Positions 27,440 through 50,713 of a DNA stretch of 64,000 nt are shown in pieces. Location of the stretch: sequence record MN871444.1. One strand, 5' to 3'. The notes under the pieces were generated by a model. The model saw only the letters and a list, made by a program, of their open reading frames with translations. It had not been told where the DNA came from and did no database searches. Position numbers and translations under genes: made by a program. The stretch's first letter is position 1, and the number at the start of each line of letters is the position of its first letter.

Positions 27440-29326
27440 ATGGGTATTAATGACGCTCGCAATACTGGTAACAACGACGCAGCTCAAGAACGTGCGCAGT
27501 CTGCAGCTCCGCAGTTCGACGAATCTCAAGTACGCCAGGCAGCTCCGCATCGCAAAACCATTACCGGTAAAGGCGGTGTGAACGCACTCCTGTCCCGTCG
27601 CCTGAACCGCGTGGGCGGTAACGAAGACATCAGCAAAATCGCTGAAATGATGCGCAGCTATCTGCGCAGCCAGCTGGACGAAGGTTACGTTCCGACGTTC
27701 GTTATTGTCGATGGCGTGACTTACGAACTGGCGGTATCTGCAATCGTTCCGTCCGTGATGCTGACTGCTCGCGGTGTTAAAACGGTGCTGGCCTATCCGA
27801 TTCTGGTAGAGCCGCGCGACCGTTCCATGGACACTGTCCGTACCGTTCGTGAAGCTGGCCGTGAACTGTCACTGCCGGTAGTAACCTCCGATTTCTACGA
27901 CGCGCGTACCGAAGAGCAGATCCGTAACGCTATCGTTCGTCAGTTCGGTCTGAACGCAGCAGATAGCGATATCAAACTGGTCGGTTACTGCACCCTGCCG
28001 GTAGAAGTATCTTCCGACGACAAAGGCGAAATCGAAGACCTGGCCGCCAACGTATTCTCGGCGCTGGAATCCTGGGTTCGCGAACAACCGGGCTCCGAAG
28101 AGCCGCGTTTCAACCTGGCAGAAATCGACAACACCCAAACTCGCTTCACCGGCAAACTGGACTTCTCTCCGGCGCCGATCAAAACCCTGACCGGCCTGCC
28201 GGTGCGTAACGACGTGACCATCACCACCAAAATGCGTGATATCACGGTCGACAGCCTGCACAGCCAATCCGGCGTTCTGTCCGAACTGAGCGGTTACGTG
28301 GACCTGATCTACGTTGACCCGCAGCCCGAACAAAACCCGTACACCCGTCAGATGTATCTGAACCCGGCGTGCTATCTCCCGAACTTCGTGATTTCGCATC
28401 AGGAAATTCTGGTTAACGCCGTGACCCCTGAACTGGTCCTGTTCGGCCTGGCATCTGCACGTCTGATGCAACAGCCGAACAACGCATTCTACAATGCGTT
28501 CAAACCGCGCCATGGCGTCAAAAACGATACCCGTGATATCGGGGCTATCGGTTACGAGTTCGATCCGACTGGCGAAGGCAAAGGTCCGAAAGCGCCTATC
28601 GATACCGCAGATTCCACCTTCAACCTGCAGACTCTTCTGAGCACTGCATTCCGCCCGGGCCTGCTGTACAGCCTGGACGTGGTAGATGGCGGTGAGTATT
28701 CCTGGGTATACGAAGCGCTGCTGTACGCTGCTAACGGCGATGCCGCGGCAGAAAACGATGTGATTCAGTATGCAGATAACCTGACCAACGGTCATTTCCG
28801 TCAGCTGTGGAACCCGGTCGAAAACCGCGTTGCGGTAGACTCCGGCGACCTGATTCCGATCGGTTACTACATCGATCCGGAAGGCCAACGTAAAGACCTG
28901 CGCGATATCGACTATCTGGCACTGCTGAACATGTTCGGTGGCAGTGATGCGGAACTGGTTTACCGCTGGTCCGAAACCTTCGGTAACCCGAACCAATCTC
29001 CGCAGCAACGTCTGGATGCACGTGTACGTATCCTGAAATCGCTGCTGAGCAACAACCTGTTCATCAAACGTATCGCACATCGCATCACCCTGACCCCGAC
29101 CTTCATCGACGTGCTGGCCACTGCCATCTCCAAAGCGGGCATCACGATCGTTCCGGAAACGGTGTTCAGCGAACAGCAGACCTATACCCGTGGGTCTACC
29201 ACCCTGGCTAACTACGCTCTGACCGGCGGTCAGTCTCCGCTGTTTGCAGGTATGCAGCAGCAGACCGTTGCCGGTTACAACACCGTATACCAGCCGCGTG
29301 GCGCAGGCAGCCGTTTCGGCGGCTAA
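27440..29326 (+). CDS. chmA: chimallin, phage nuclear shell protein
   Basis: 628 aa; LLSRRL.R, G.PVRND.T, L..GYVDL.Y, LDV.DGGEYSW, IP.GYY....G..KDLRD.D motifs; directly upstream of nvRNAP beta'. Confidence 0.92.
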   Translation: MGINDARNTGNNDAAQERAQSAAPQFDESQVRQAAPHRKTITGKGGVNALLSRRLNRVGGNEDISKIAEMMRSYLRSQLDEGYVPTFVIVDGVTYELAVSAIVPSVMLTARGVKTVLAYPILVEPRDRSMDTVRTVREAGRELSLPVVTSDFYDARTEEQIRNAIVRQFGLNAADSDIKLVGYCTLPVEVSSDDKGEIEDLAANVFSALESWVREQPGSEEPRFNLAEIDNTQTRFTGKLDFSPAPIKTLTGLPVRNDVTITTKMRDITVDSLHSQSGVLSELSGYVDLIYVDPQPEQNPYTRQMYLNPACYLPNFVISHQEILVNAVTPELVLFGLASARLMQQPNNAFYNAFKPRHGVKNDTRDIGAIGYEFDPTGEGKGPKAPIDTADSTFNLQTLLSTAFRPGLLYSLDVVDGGEYSWVYEALLYAANGDAAAENDVIQYADNLTNGHFRQLWNPVENRVAVDSGDLIPIGYYIDPEGQRKDLRDIDYLALLNMFGGSDAELVYRWSETFGNPNQSPQQRLDARVRILKSLLSNNLFIKRIAHRITLTPTFIDVLATAISKAGITIVPETVFSEQQTYTRGSTTLANYALTGGQSPLFAGMQQQTVAGYNTVYQPRGAGSRFGG

Positions 29327-29346
29327 GTCTGATGTAATGCCATAAC

Positions 29347-29376
29347 AGCGGGAGGGGTAAAACCCTCCCGCTTTAT
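29347..29376 (+). terminator. hairpin terminator after chmA
   Basis: AGCGGGAGGG-GTAAAA-CCCTCCCGCT-TTATTT. Confidence 0.75.
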
Positions 29377-29419
29377 TTCCCACAGCTTCTTTTTTTAGTT
29401 AAGCAACCAAAGGGTAATC

Positions 29420-47688: not shown

Positions 47689-48054
47689 ATGTCAAACGAT
47701 ATTACCGAACAAGATTGGAGAGCAGTTGATGTAACGACAGACCGCCTTGCTGCAACGGCCTGCCCGGTGGATGATGACCTTTACGATGAAATCGAACATT
47801 TCATCGAATTCATCAAACCAATAGCCCACGCCAGAACCCCATTCCGGTTGGGTTCATTATACCGACAATGGCGGGATTATCGGGGGGAAGATATCATCTA
47901 TTCTCTTTCCCTCAACGAGGTTAAGCGTATCTGGACCGCCGTAGCTGTGGTTTGTGACTCTATGTCCTTACCGGCGTATTGCGGTCAAATACCTCAACAA
48001 TGCATTCTTTATGATAATGCAACTCACCGTATTGTTCGGTATCTTAAAGATTGA
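47689..48054 (+). CDS. hypothetical acidic protein
   Basis: GGGG SD, 121 aa. Confidence 0.65.
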   Translation: MSNDITEQDWRAVDVTTDRLAATACPVDDDLYDEIEHFIEFIKPIAHARTPFRLGSLYRQWRDYRGEDIIYSLSLNEVKRIWTAVAVVCDSMSLPAYCGQIPQQCILYDNATHRIVRYLKD

Positions 48055-48058
48055 TGTG

Positions 48059-48102
48059 ACGGCATAAAGGGAGAGGCTTCGGCCTCTCCCTGTTTATGTT
48101 GC
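48059..48102. terminator. bidirectional hairpin with TATGYYG tails
   Basis: ACGGCATA..GGGAGAGGC-TTCG-GCCTCTCCC..TATGTTGC. Confidence 0.85.
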
Positions 48103-48106
48103 CTTT

Positions 48107-48595
48107 TTATTTTTTGGCCTTTTTCTTCTCTTCCGCCAGTTTTCTTTCAAGCTTATCTTGTTCATTTTCAGCTTGATTGATGCCTTCTGCGTTTGCCAAT
48201 TCACATTCTTGCAGTATCCACTCGATCATGTGCCTGGGCAGGGCCATGAACTCAGCGAACCCCAACCCAAACAAATCCCATACTCGATTAGCCCTATACT
48301 CACGCATCCTCAATTGCCATCCAGTATGCACCCCCAAGGCCTCCCCAGGATGTACTAGTTGACTGGCAAATGGAGGTATCTTACCAGACCTATCATCAAA
48401 TAACCCATAAGTTGTATCGTAGGCTTCCATCATGGTAACCTGTAATGCAATCGAGTTATTGATGGTTGGTTTGATTTTCTCAAGCGCAAGTAAATCATTG
48501 TGAACCCCCCTAGGCGGTAAACCAAACCTGGGGTGGGTGACATGTCCGGCTACAGCAGAATTTTCTGGAGTCGATTGGATACTAGGGTAAAAAAA
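48107..48595 (-). CDS. -1 frame extension (GT/E'-like part) of the putative tail/baseplate assembly chaperone
   Basis: frame open from 48607 to 48107 with no ATG/GTG/TTG until 48433; contains FGLGFAEFMALP. Confidence 0.7.
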   Translation of the reverse strand, partial: FFYPSIQSTPENSAVAGHVTHPRFGLPPRGVHNDLLALEKIKPTINNSIALQVTMMEAYDTTYGLFDDRSGKIPPFASQLVHPGEALGVHTGWQLRMREYRANRVWDLFGLGFAEFMALPRHMIEWILQECELANAEGINQAENEQDKLERKLAEEKKKAKK

Positions 48596-50217
48596 GTGCT
48601 CACCACATCAAGCGGCAGGATGATCTGTTCTTTTGCATCTGGTCGCAATTGTGTTTCACCGCAACGTTCACAGGCATAGTTAACAATACCAATTACTGTG
48701 GTGGTGGCGTCTTCCACAAACTGATTTACACTACCGACGATGAGGTCTACAATATCGCGGTCCGCTGAGAAGGTGCGAGACAGCTCTTCCAGCGTGGATA
48801 CCGAATCAATAACGGACTCTGACATCTCTCCCGCATCGATAACAATCCGACCAAAATACATGCTGTAGTTTCGCAGAGTTTCGACGGTGGCCAGCTGTTG
48901 GATGTATACGTCGCGGTCAGTACCATGCAATACGGAACCGAAGGTTGCATCTGTCTGTTCCACGATACCGTCAACCCAACGCAGGCCGGAGTCTTCATAT
49001 TCGGCATAAGTGGGGACGGTCAGTTCCATAGTCATCTGGTTACCTAAATCGATGGTAGCCGACTCAGGAACACTAAAGCGGGACTGCATGGCCTTAACTT
49101 CGTCCAGCTTCATGCTTGCGCCTTGACGGTTTTTACTCATGAACCGACGTTGTTCTTCAGTAAACCGTTTACGGTCGACAAACAGGAGTTTGTTTAAATC
49201 GACAATACCCCGGTTGACGTGATTACATTTGCTCAAATCAGCAGTACATGGCTGCGACAGCGGGTAGCCGTTGGGGTAAATACAGGACGCAAATCCCAGA
49301 ATCATGGACGGGATATCCGTGATCAGCAGATGGTCTTTAATAGCCTGGCGTTTACCTTCTTCACTGGCGTATTCCAGAGAAGTATCATCTACATGGTCAA
49401 GGATAAGATCCATGACGTACTTGATGATATAAATGCGGTCGTTATCAAATACCGCCCCTTTGGTCTGACGCCCTAACTTAACTTTTTCAGTTTGGATACG
49501 ACGATCCAGTTCAAGGAGGGCGGCTTCTTGCGGCGGAATGAAGGTTACCCAGAACATCGAATTGTACATCGGCCACTGCGCATGACCGCCCAGAGACATT
49601 CTGGCTTGAACGCGGCGGATAGCTGCCTGCCCGGACAATTTAGGGGCATTGCTTTCCTGAATTTTGGGTCGACCTACGCGAACTCGGTCAGCGCCATGAG
49701 TTAAATATTGCGCCCAATCGCGGCCAGACTGCCAAGCGGCGTAGGTCACGTCTTCTTCGTCTGCAGGTGACATGAAGTTAGCCGCACTCGCTGCTGCTAA
49801 GACCCATTCCGCGCTGGATTCTGGGTCCGGCAAACCGCCTTTACTTTTTACGTTAGCAGTAACGTGCGCAATTTGTCGGTAGGTTGCAAACAGCAGGTTG
49901 ATAGAATCTGCCGAGGTGATGGCTTTTTTCTGTTTTTCACCTACGTCCTTAAACAGTGGCAGTTCTACGGTTGCGTTTGGTGGGAACTCTCGCAGGTCGG
50001 GACCCGGATCATAAACGCCATCATCCGTTTCGTCATCGCCTGCCTCTGGACTCGCATCTGGAATAGCAGCCCCCTCTTCCACCGAGCTTTCATCCTGGGG
50101 TTCCTGTGGAGTCGCTGACTGTTCAGTGAGACCGGCGTTATCAAACTCGTCCCACGCAGATTTGCCTGGGGTGGGTTCGTGCATAGGAACGTCATTACCG
50201 ATGTTGTTATCGCTCAT
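48550..50217 (-). CDS. putative tail/baseplate assembly chaperone (T4 gp26/gp51-like, G part)
   Basis: acidic N-terminus; C..C motifs (CTADLSKC, CERC); ends ...LDVVSTFFTL on ACT TTT TTT. Confidence 0.7.
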   Translation of the reverse strand: MSDNNIGNDVPMHEPTPGKSAWDEFDNAGLTEQSATPQEPQDESSVEEGAAIPDASPEAGDDETDDGVYDPGPDLREFPPNATVELPLFKDVGEKQKKAITSADSINLLFATYRQIAHVTANVKSKGGLPDPESSAEWVLAAASAANFMSPADEEDVTYAAWQSGRDWAQYLTHGADRVRVGRPKIQESNAPKLSGQAAIRRVQARMSLGGHAQWPMYNSMFWVTFIPPQEAALLELDRRIQTEKVKLGRQTKGAVFDNDRIYIIKYVMDLILDHVDDTSLEYASEEGKRQAIKDHLLITDIPSMILGFASCIYPNGYPLSQPCTADLSKCNHVNRGIVDLNKLLFVDRKRFTEEQRRFMSKNRQGASMKLDEVKAMQSRFSVPESATIDLGNQMTMELTVPTYAEYEDSGLRWVDGIVEQTDATFGSVLHGTDRDVYIQQLATVETLRNYSMYFGRIVIDAGEMSESVIDSVSTLEELSRTFSADRDIVDLIVGSVNQFVEDATTTVIGIVNYACERCGETQLRPDAKEQIILPLDVVSTFFTLVSNRLQKILL

Positions 50218-50713
50218 TGTTTTCTCCGGATTGCTCTCTGGTGTTTCCCATCAGATTAGAAAGTTCTAGATAGGTGGGGATGACGTCAGTGGTCCAATCA
50301 CTTTGCCAGGCGTAAAATGCTTCGCCCATCGGGATGGTATTAAACTCAATACCATCCATTTGGCGGGTGATGCTGACAACTGCTTCTTTATTACCTGCTT
50401 TACGGTGGGTTTTCAACTCAACCTTTAGCGAGTCCCATTCCGTTTGCAGCGCAGTGTATTGCCGGCATAGTTCTTCTACCCGGTCCGCCATATTACGCGA
50501 TTTTACGTTGAGATCTTTACTAAGGCGTAGAATTTCGGCATGGTTGGGGGAACCGACCCCGAACATTGGAAGCTTTAGTACTGAACCAATTTCACATACC
50601 GCGGCAATCTGATTAAGGCACGCGCGATATAGTGCATCTAATTCTACCCAGGTTTGTCCCGGAGCTTGTCTCGCATCAGCCCGCGATTTGCGGGGGGCTT
50701 TTGAAGTTGGCAT
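50207..50713 (-). CDS. hypothetical coiled-coil protein
   Basis: 168 aa, overlaps the downstream start; AAGGGA SD. Confidence 0.75.
   Translation of the reverse strand: MPTSKAPRKSRADARQAPGQTWVELDALYRACLNQIAAVCEIGSVLKLPMFGVGSPNHAEILRLSKDLNVKSRNMADRVEELCRQYTALQTEWDSLKVELKTHRKAGNKEAVVSITRQMDGIEFNTIPMGEAFYAWQSDWTTDVIPTYLELSNLMGNTREQSGENNER

Follow-up and report, generated by a model that had tools for sequence, protein, structure and literature searches.

The locus described here raises the question of whether two adjoining reading frames encode two separate proteins or a single protein made in two lengths. It lies in a 64,000-nucleotide (nt) stretch of the sequence record MN871444.1, hereafter the window, in whose numbering all coordinates are given. 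There, a minus-strand gene of 555 amino acids (aa) plus TAG (48550-50217), orthologous to phiKZ gp77 (core gene cg18 of the Chimalliviridae), is followed in a different frame by a 108-aa open reading frame (ORF; 48107-48433, minus strand). An initial annotation of the window had proposed that the two are joined by a programmed -1 frameshift on a U-run, giving products of about 555 and about 703 aa. The phase of the heptamer at this site, a -1 frame that is open in all 44 sequence clusters analyzed, a T kept at the preceding wobble position in 40 of them and a start-less stretch that evolves as coding sequence strongly support such a frameshift, which is predicted to yield these products. Taken as a whole, the data are best explained by one recoded gene, read with a ribosomal -1 slip and specifying a chaperone-like, non-virion morphogenetic factor in two isoforms. 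We put the probability of this reading at about 0.78.

The codons at the putative slip site read AGC ACT TTT TTT ACC. The last base of ACT and the two TTT Phe codons form the slippery heptamer U_UUU_UUU (48589-48595, minus strand) in the X_XXY_YYZ phase. From this T7 run (48595-48589), 12 sense codons lead to the 0-frame TAG (48552-48550), the heptamer being placed 40 nt before the stop. The -1 frame of the slip site is the frame of the 108-aa ORF (48433 to 48107). After a TGA at 48610-48608 it stays open for 166 codons up to a TAA at 48109-48107, and its first ATG, GTG or TTG is the ATG at 48433. What the initial annotation had stated about the sequence itself (the 555-aa ORF, the T7 run, the TGA, the open -1 frame and the lack of a start until 48433) was correct throughout. 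Downstream of the heptamer comes a dual-coding overlap (48550-48588, minus strand), read in the 0 frame as the last 12 sense codons and the stop, and in the -1 frame as codons 1-13 of the extension. Next is a start-less, usually unannotated stretch (48434-48549, minus strand) between the 0-frame stop and the first -1-frame start codon. Finally comes the 108-aa ORF called by gene finders, for instance as gp105 of the related phage Eowyn. This ORF represents the C-terminal two thirds of the -1 extension, which as read after the slip would comprise 160 codons plus TAA (48107-48589, minus strand). A slip on the heptamer is thereby predicted to give 543 + 160 = 703 residues beside the 555-aa form. 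Separate, weak initiation of the 108-aa ORF at 48433 is possible.

The region matches the unannotated record of Serratia phage KpGz_1 (MN871444; host Klebsiella pneumoniae) at 100% identity, and its relatives at approximately 80% nucleotide identity are Klebsiella phage vB_KvM-Eowyn (Eowyn) and KpHz_2. Both retain the heptamer and the open -1 frame. Between the slip site and the 0-frame stop, the -1 frame has 13 codons (39 nt, 48589-48551), in which KpGz_1, Eowyn and KpHz_2 show only one or two differences. The genomes diverge by about 20%, yet the dual-coding overlap is nearly invariant. In the 39 codons between the 0-frame stop and ATG 48433, 14 of the 20 differences from Eowyn fall at third positions of the -1 frame, corresponding to 13 synonymous and three non-synonymous codon changes. 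The annotated 108-aa part follows the same pattern, with 34 synonymous and eight non-synonymous changes. This bias indicates that the "intergenic" stretch is coding in the -1 frame although it has no start codon, in agreement with the earlier remark that it reads like protein. It also contains the best-conserved N-terminal residues of the -1 product in the family.

We then considered the arrangement in the wider family, in 75 related loci forming 44 clusters that share at most 50% aa identity. The survey took in four metagenomic homologues (28-45% aa identity), 67 further loci from a scan of IMG/VR, and phiKZ, PCH45, pPa_SNUABM_DT01 (DT01) and the Bacillus jumbo phage AgentSmith from GenBank. 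Counts by locus refer to the 71 loci with distinct downstream products, after exclusion of L067 (frame mis-set by tblastn) and L046 (contig end). Counts by cluster refer to one representative per 50% aa identity cluster (n = 44), in order to limit phylogenetic redundancy. All four metagenomic homologues carry an in-phase U_UUU_UUU or U_UUU_UUC. Their downstream ORFs and those of the 67 IMG/VR loci use the -1 frame without exception, and no stop interrupts this frame back through the heptamer. The -1 extension measures 151-201 aa (median 168) and the overlap, counted from the last base of the run up to the 0-frame stop, 24-132 nt (median 45). The comparison of orthologues that the initial annotation had called for was strongly positive: 63 of 71 loci have an in-phase heptamer (U_UUU_UUU in 40, U_UUU_UUC in 23), and in 44 of 44 clusters no stop interrupts the -1 frame on the way from the slip site to the end of the 0 frame. 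As controls, an equal number of -1 codons just upstream is stop-free in 15 of 44 clusters, and the +1 frame across the overlap in 17 of 44.

Conservation at the site exceeds what the protein requires. The base preceding the Phe-Phe (FF) codons is T in 40 of 44 clusters, although the codon to which it belongs varies among 11 amino acids (T, V, I, L, A, G, S, N, H, Y, E). Elsewhere in these genes, T accounts for 0.31 of the third positions of four-fold codons. Similarly, the first Phe codon is TTT in 42 of 42 clusters, compared with a TTT share of 0.35 elsewhere in the genes. Among the conserved positions of the -1 extension (H16, V17, F22, G23, Y57, E83 and P118), those at the N-terminus of the product are kept in 76% (H16), 61% (V17), 97% (F22) and 79% (G23). 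In Bacillus phage AgentSmith (MW749006; L088:3568-4068), a slippery U_UUU_UUA is retained while the second Phe is replaced by Leu; the nucleotide pattern is therefore better conserved than the amino acid. Its -1 ORF has 171 codons, with the first start about 90 codons past the slip. The locus combines an in-phase X_XXY_YYZ heptamer, an open, start-less and coding -1 ORF and nucleotide conservation beyond the need of the protein, as looked for in a frameshift site.

The same layout is present in phiKZ, where gp77 contains U_UUU_UUU 40 nt before its stop, followed by a 171-codon -1 ORF that begins inside gp77 (NC_004629 71442-71957, minus strand). The RefSeq coding sequence (CDS) PHIKZ076.4 corresponds to just the last 80 codons of this ORF, and the 218-nt gap between gp77 and PHIKZ076.4 carries no annotation. 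Orthology of the 555-aa protein with phiKZ gp77 is borne out by tblastn, which found homologues in 205 phage records, by the Eowyn orthologue (553 aa), marked "ORF077" by its annotators, and by gene order. A published analysis of the core genome of nucleus-forming phages lists phiKZ gp077 as cg18, with the description "hypothetical protein" (PMC10299810, supplement). In Erwinia phage Deimos-Minion (NC_041972; L089:2532-3080), the downstream ORF was annotated with a start 136 nt within the upstream gene. Its length differs between records, from 77 to 182 aa as annotated, a sign that the true N-terminus of the downstream product is not a start codon. Throughout the phiKZ gp77 family, in Chimalliviridae as well as in related jumbo phages, the two-frame arrangement is kept; phiKZ itself and a Bacillus phage are among the examples.

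These features can be accommodated in the following mechanism. Most ribosomes would read the 0 frame to the TAG and produce the 555-aa protein. A fraction would slip back by one base with two Phe-tRNAs on UUU UUU, both of which could re-pair perfectly, and would continue for 160 codons in the -1 frame. The resulting 703-aa protein would have its first 543 residues in common with the short form and carry an additional helical C-terminal domain. A stimulatory downstream structure or an upstream Shine-Dalgarno-like element is common at -1 frameshift sites, without being obligatory. As no helper RNA structure or Shine-Dalgarno-like element is conserved in the family, the heptamer alone probably fixes a low ratio of long to short form. 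The initial annotation had drawn attention to a GC stem downstream of the site. The stem does exist (48507-48533, minus strand; seven pairs and one bulge), but a role as stimulator was not supported: it begins 55 nt after the heptamer, it folds like shuffled sequences and is not unusually stable, and the family has no conserved downstream structure.

The main rival to ribosomal frameshifting is transcriptional slippage, in which the phage or host RNA polymerase would stutter on the T-run and the altered run length in the mRNA would join the two frames. Identical proteins would be expected. Long runs are indeed found at most loci (7 T in 41 of 71, 8 T in 15 of 71), but 15 of 71 have runs of merely 5-6 T, and the U_UUU_UUC and U_UUU_UUA variants preserve the logic of the heptamer while shortening the run. 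Such slippage would dispense with a ribosomal stimulator, none of which is conserved here, and the Chimalliviridae possess their own unusual multisubunit polymerases, a subunit gene of which adjoins the pair. Against this, the T is held at the wobble base before the Phe pair and not after it, and codon phase matters to tRNA re-pairing, not to a stuttering polymerase. The phase-locked heptamer points instead to tandem tRNA slippage on the ribosome, and we consider transcriptional slippage unlikely.

Alternatively, the locus could hold two ordinary genes, the downstream protein being translated independently, either from a start codon (canonical or rare) or through re-initiation once ribosomes have reached the 0-frame stop, and the heptamer being just the footprint of a conserved Phe-Phe motif. 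Gene callers and annotators do list separate genes, and a weak AGGU is located 7 nt before ATG 48433. In several loci a GTG stands at the conserved V17, just past the 0-frame stop; gene callers begin the downstream gene of the four metagenomic homologues at this codon, the Val of a Gly-His-Val motif. However, the V17 codon is GTC in the window and GTT in Eowyn, so the conserved Val cannot serve as a start there, and 48 of 71 loci have no ATG, GTG or TTG ahead of F22-G23. Two independent genes would also have to accommodate a start-less stretch that evolves as coding. Selection on a Phe-Phe motif leaves unexplained both the invariant TTT of the first Phe codon and the wobble T across 11 amino acids, and does not account for a -1 frame that is never closed in the overlap, compared with 29 closures in 44 matched upstream spans. 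Taken together, the comparative tests make two ordinary genes very unlikely. They also exclude a sequencing error in the error-prone homopolymer of the unannotated record MN871444, and in practice refute a recent frameshift mutation splitting a single 700-aa gene, since the two-frame layout recurs in genomes and metagenome contigs that were sequenced independently, over 75 in number and phiKZ among them, and no single-frame long fusion was found among 145 cluster representatives of the downstream piece in a library of 1.8 billion proteins, all of them 91-180 aa long.

Having favored a recoded gene, we turned to the function of its products. The 555-aa protein has an acidic N-terminal part of about 130 aa modeled at low confidence, Cys residues at 324, 331, 516 and 519, and a terminal FF motif. 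Sequence searches of Pfam, NCBIfam and PDB chains returned no match for either piece. In PHROGs, both belong to families of unknown function, the upstream part to 4585 (phrog_4585, E 1.5e-102) and 8054, and the downstream part to 12109, 7580 and 13274. The structure of the upstream protein was modeled from a 7-sequence alignment; profile searches with 7 and with 61 sequences yielded the same seven homologues. Foldseek comparison of this model with PDB gave no neighbor. In BFVD, beyond the protein's own family, it matched a "Baseplate hub assembly protein, bacteriophage T4-like" (E 4.5e-3) and two "Baseplate protein" entries, whereas tail assembly and tape-measure chaperones appeared at E 0.09-3 only. 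Several GenBank submitters label orthologues as gp26-like.

T4 gp26 and gp51 are baseplate hub assembly chaperones (PMC3004832). A gp77-family alignment (61 sequences) was set against an alignment of T4 gp26 and eight diverse orthologues (nine sequences). With hhalign, the two matched at 82% probability (E 1e-5) over 136 columns spanning the first Cys pair, a conserved Arg/Pro region, a C-terminal CPxCG and the terminal Phe-Phe. In a local hidden Markov model (HMM) search with 90 window ORFs as decoys, the first 21 non-self hits of the gp26 model were all gp77-family proteins, and the reverse search gave the same picture, none of these hits being individually significant. The four Cys residues occur together in 52 of 61 members and are jointly absent in the other nine, which fits a single four-Cys metal site lost in some lineages. 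The resemblance to gp26/gp51 that the initial annotation had seen in the upstream ORF was thus recovered in both profile and structure comparisons, and the upstream protein is probably homologous to these T4 chaperones.

The -1 extension was modeled with confidence (74 sequences; predicted local distance difference test score (pLDDT) 85). After 30 poorly ordered residues, the model forms a small helical bundle and ends in a 40-residue helix. It matches only unnamed jumbo-phage proteins (Goslar, Psa21, Phabio, RP12, PA7), and the suggestion of a T/E'-like downstream part was not borne out. Identity of the extension with T4 gp51, gp28 or gp25 was rejected (probability below 1%). No chain of solved structures matches either piece in the PDB copy searched, which possibly does not include the phiKZ baseplate coordinates. 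According to the Goslar virion paper, the Goslar baseplate closely matches the recently published baseplate structure of the phiKZ virion. In phiKZ, gp77 lacks the "structural" note given to several neighboring genes (gp79-81, gp83-87). These observations hint, weakly and indirectly, at a non-virion assembly factor. We propose that the protein could be a morphogenetic factor that is absent from the virion and is a distant relative of gp26/gp51, the chaperones of baseplate-hub assembly in T4. Its isoforms would divide the work as lambda G and GT do, with one assembly partner bound by the common part and a second recruited by the extension, which a minority of molecules would carry.

Several observations weigh against this interpretation. 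The long trans-frame product is a prediction from the sequence, and the role given to the extension is drawn purely by analogy. Imperfect heptamers (G_UUU_UUC, G_UUU_UUU, G_GUU_UUU or a T5 run) are found in eight of 71 loci, and about a third of loci have a GTG, TTG or ATG at or before the conserved N-terminal motif, where separate initiation is possible. In the window, the folding of the 99 nt that follow the heptamer is matched by shuffled sequences (z = -0.32). Across the family, gene-internal windows are on average more stable than the 70 nt past the site (mean z = +0.52), and upstream Shine-Dalgarno-like tetramers occur at background frequency (4 of 71 loci, against a background of 0.07). 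Because no stimulatory element is conserved, the efficiency of the shift could be very low. As for the protein, the upstream model has low overall confidence (pLDDT 52, with a core at residues 210-500 reaching 70-88). The link to gp26 is moderate, hhalign giving 33% with T4 gp26 alone and 41% when gp51 is added to the gp26 alignment, an addition that lowered the probability. Finally, PF12322, which matches T4 gp26 (E 8.8e-64) and gp51 (E 3.9e-52) over their full length and so identifies them as paralogues, matches none of the 61 gp77-family members at E <= 0.01.

The genomic context is that of a nucleus-forming jumbo phage, as the initial annotation had claimed: Eowynvirus is assigned to Chimalliviridae in the current NCBI taxonomy, and the phiKZ gene order is retained, with gp78-like and then gp77-like genes on one strand and gp79-like and virion RNA polymerase subunit gp80-like genes on the other. 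In both the window and phiKZ, the neighbors of the pair are the gp78-like and gp79-like genes, the virion RNA polymerase subunit gene and a helicase gene. The gene preceding the 555-aa gene (50207-50713, minus strand; 168 aa, function unknown) occupies the position of phiKZ gp78 on the same strand and in the same unit, and shares 11 nt with the beginning of the 555-aa gene. The -1 ORF is closely followed by a GC-rich hairpin of 10 pairs (48068-48091), located between the convergent genes 47689-48054 (plus strand) and the -1 ORF (minus strand), which likely marks the end of the transcription unit. This hairpin may act as a bidirectional terminator. No terminator- or promoter-like signal was found in the window between the 0 frame and the -1 frame.

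Two further observations concern other genes. At 27440-29383 of the window, a 504-aa ORF beginning with GTG (27869-29383, minus strand) is almost wholly antisense to a 628-aa ORF (27440-29326, plus strand), and one of them is probably spurious. In a metagenomic relative at 45% identity (L003:5453-7192), a 579-aa gene with a weak LAGLIDADG_3 match is found two genes downstream of the pair. It may represent a homing endonuclease or intein insertion, and it is absent from the window.

Regarding novelty, the initial annotation was not aware of a description of this frameshift in Chimalliviridae. We found no report of a frameshift in phiKZ-like phages in full-text searches of the literature available without subscription. 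No joined CDS is present in six annotated records (Eowyn, phiKZ RefSeq, PCH45, DT01, AgentSmith and Deimos-Minion), which show either two CDS or an unannotated gap. The frameshift is likely, though not certainly, undescribed so far. It would add a recoding event to core gene cg18 of the nucleus-forming phages, including the models phiKZ, PhiPA3, 201phi2-1, Goslar, RAY and PCH45, and a predicted protein of about 79 kDa that is missing from the six annotated records. It also accounts for a recurrent oddity of annotation, in that the downstream ORF is given anything from 77 to 182 aa, with starts that disagree between records, and that "intergenic" gaps change in the manner of coding sequence. 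For cg18 it would provide an initial clue to function, as a putative assembly factor made in two isoforms at a fixed ratio. The site itself would be a clean natural example of a stimulator-less U_UUU_UUY sequence, conserved in phages of hosts ranging from Pseudomonas to Bacillus, and the family would connect T4 gp26/gp51 with the frameshifted tail chaperones in a way that can be tested.

How does this putative system compare with those already known? In lambda G/GT and P2 E/E', a -1 slip produces short and extended tail assembly chaperones (Levin et al. 1993; Xu, Hendrix and Duda 2004, both as cited in PMC5009743). In G/GT-type pairs, the common part binds the tape measure and the extension the tube protein, and the chaperones are absent from virions. 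The accessible part of this review mentions no case of frameshift in a jumbo phage or in a baseplate gene. As in these systems, the slip would take place a few codons before the end of the first ORF and give short and C-terminally extended forms with a common N-terminal part. As in lambda G/GT, the layout is conserved far beyond sequence similarity, and neither gp77-family product matches virion chains of solved structures. By contrast, the gp77-family protein is about four times larger (555/703 aa) and shows no sequence or profile match to any chaperone family, and its extension is unlike any named T or E' domain. Membership in the lambda G/GT or P2 E/E' families was not supported, with no match in Pfam, among annotated PHROGs or in PDB, and Foldseek values for such chaperones of E 0.09-3. 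The genomic hallmark of the G/GT type is also missing: the pair does not lie between tube and tape-measure genes, neither of which adjoins it in the window or in phiKZ, and adjoins the helicase and virion RNA polymerase subunit genes instead. The label "G/GT-type", used in the initial annotation, holds as a working analogy only.

Another comparison can be made with E. coli dnaX (tau/gamma) and T7 capsid 10A/10B, in each of which a single gene yields two isoforms at a fixed ratio by way of a homopolymeric or nearly homopolymeric heptamer (reviewed in PMC5009743). Those sites have known stimulators or other outcomes, since the shift in dnaX shortens the protein. In the gp77 family, no stimulator is conserved and the product would be lengthened by a domain of 160 aa that is modeled as folded.

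By descent, the closest relatives are probably the T4 hub-assembly chaperones gp26 and gp51, which have no frameshift. The profile alignment covers the C-terminal two thirds of gp26 with the Cys pair, CPxCG and Phe-Phe a few residues from the end, and gp26/gp51, as proposed for the gp77 family, are assembly factors rather than resolved parts of the virion. In T4 (NC_000866 115802-117228), gp26 and gp51 are encoded divergently, side by side. T4 gp26 has 208 aa and no extension; gene 26 has a second, shorter annotated internal product, 26', and is followed by gene 25, whose first base is also the final base of the stop codon of gene 26, and which lies in the -1 frame of gene 26. A shift from gene 26 into gene 25 was rejected: the FF codons, TTC TTT, do not form a slippery sequence, and the reading frame is closed immediately afterwards. 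As gp26 ends three residues after Phe-Phe, the T4 protein stops where the jumbo-phage proteins would shift. We tentatively suggest that the gp77 family could be the missing counterpart of the frameshifted G/GT chaperone in giant contractile-tail phages, with T4 gp26/gp51 as its frameshift-less descendants or cousins, although we hold this broader proposal to be doubtful. If true, it would extend the rule of frameshifted chaperones to Chimalliviridae and link the well-understood mechanism of lambda to the hub-assembly chaperones of T4, for which it has been uncertain over decades how they act.

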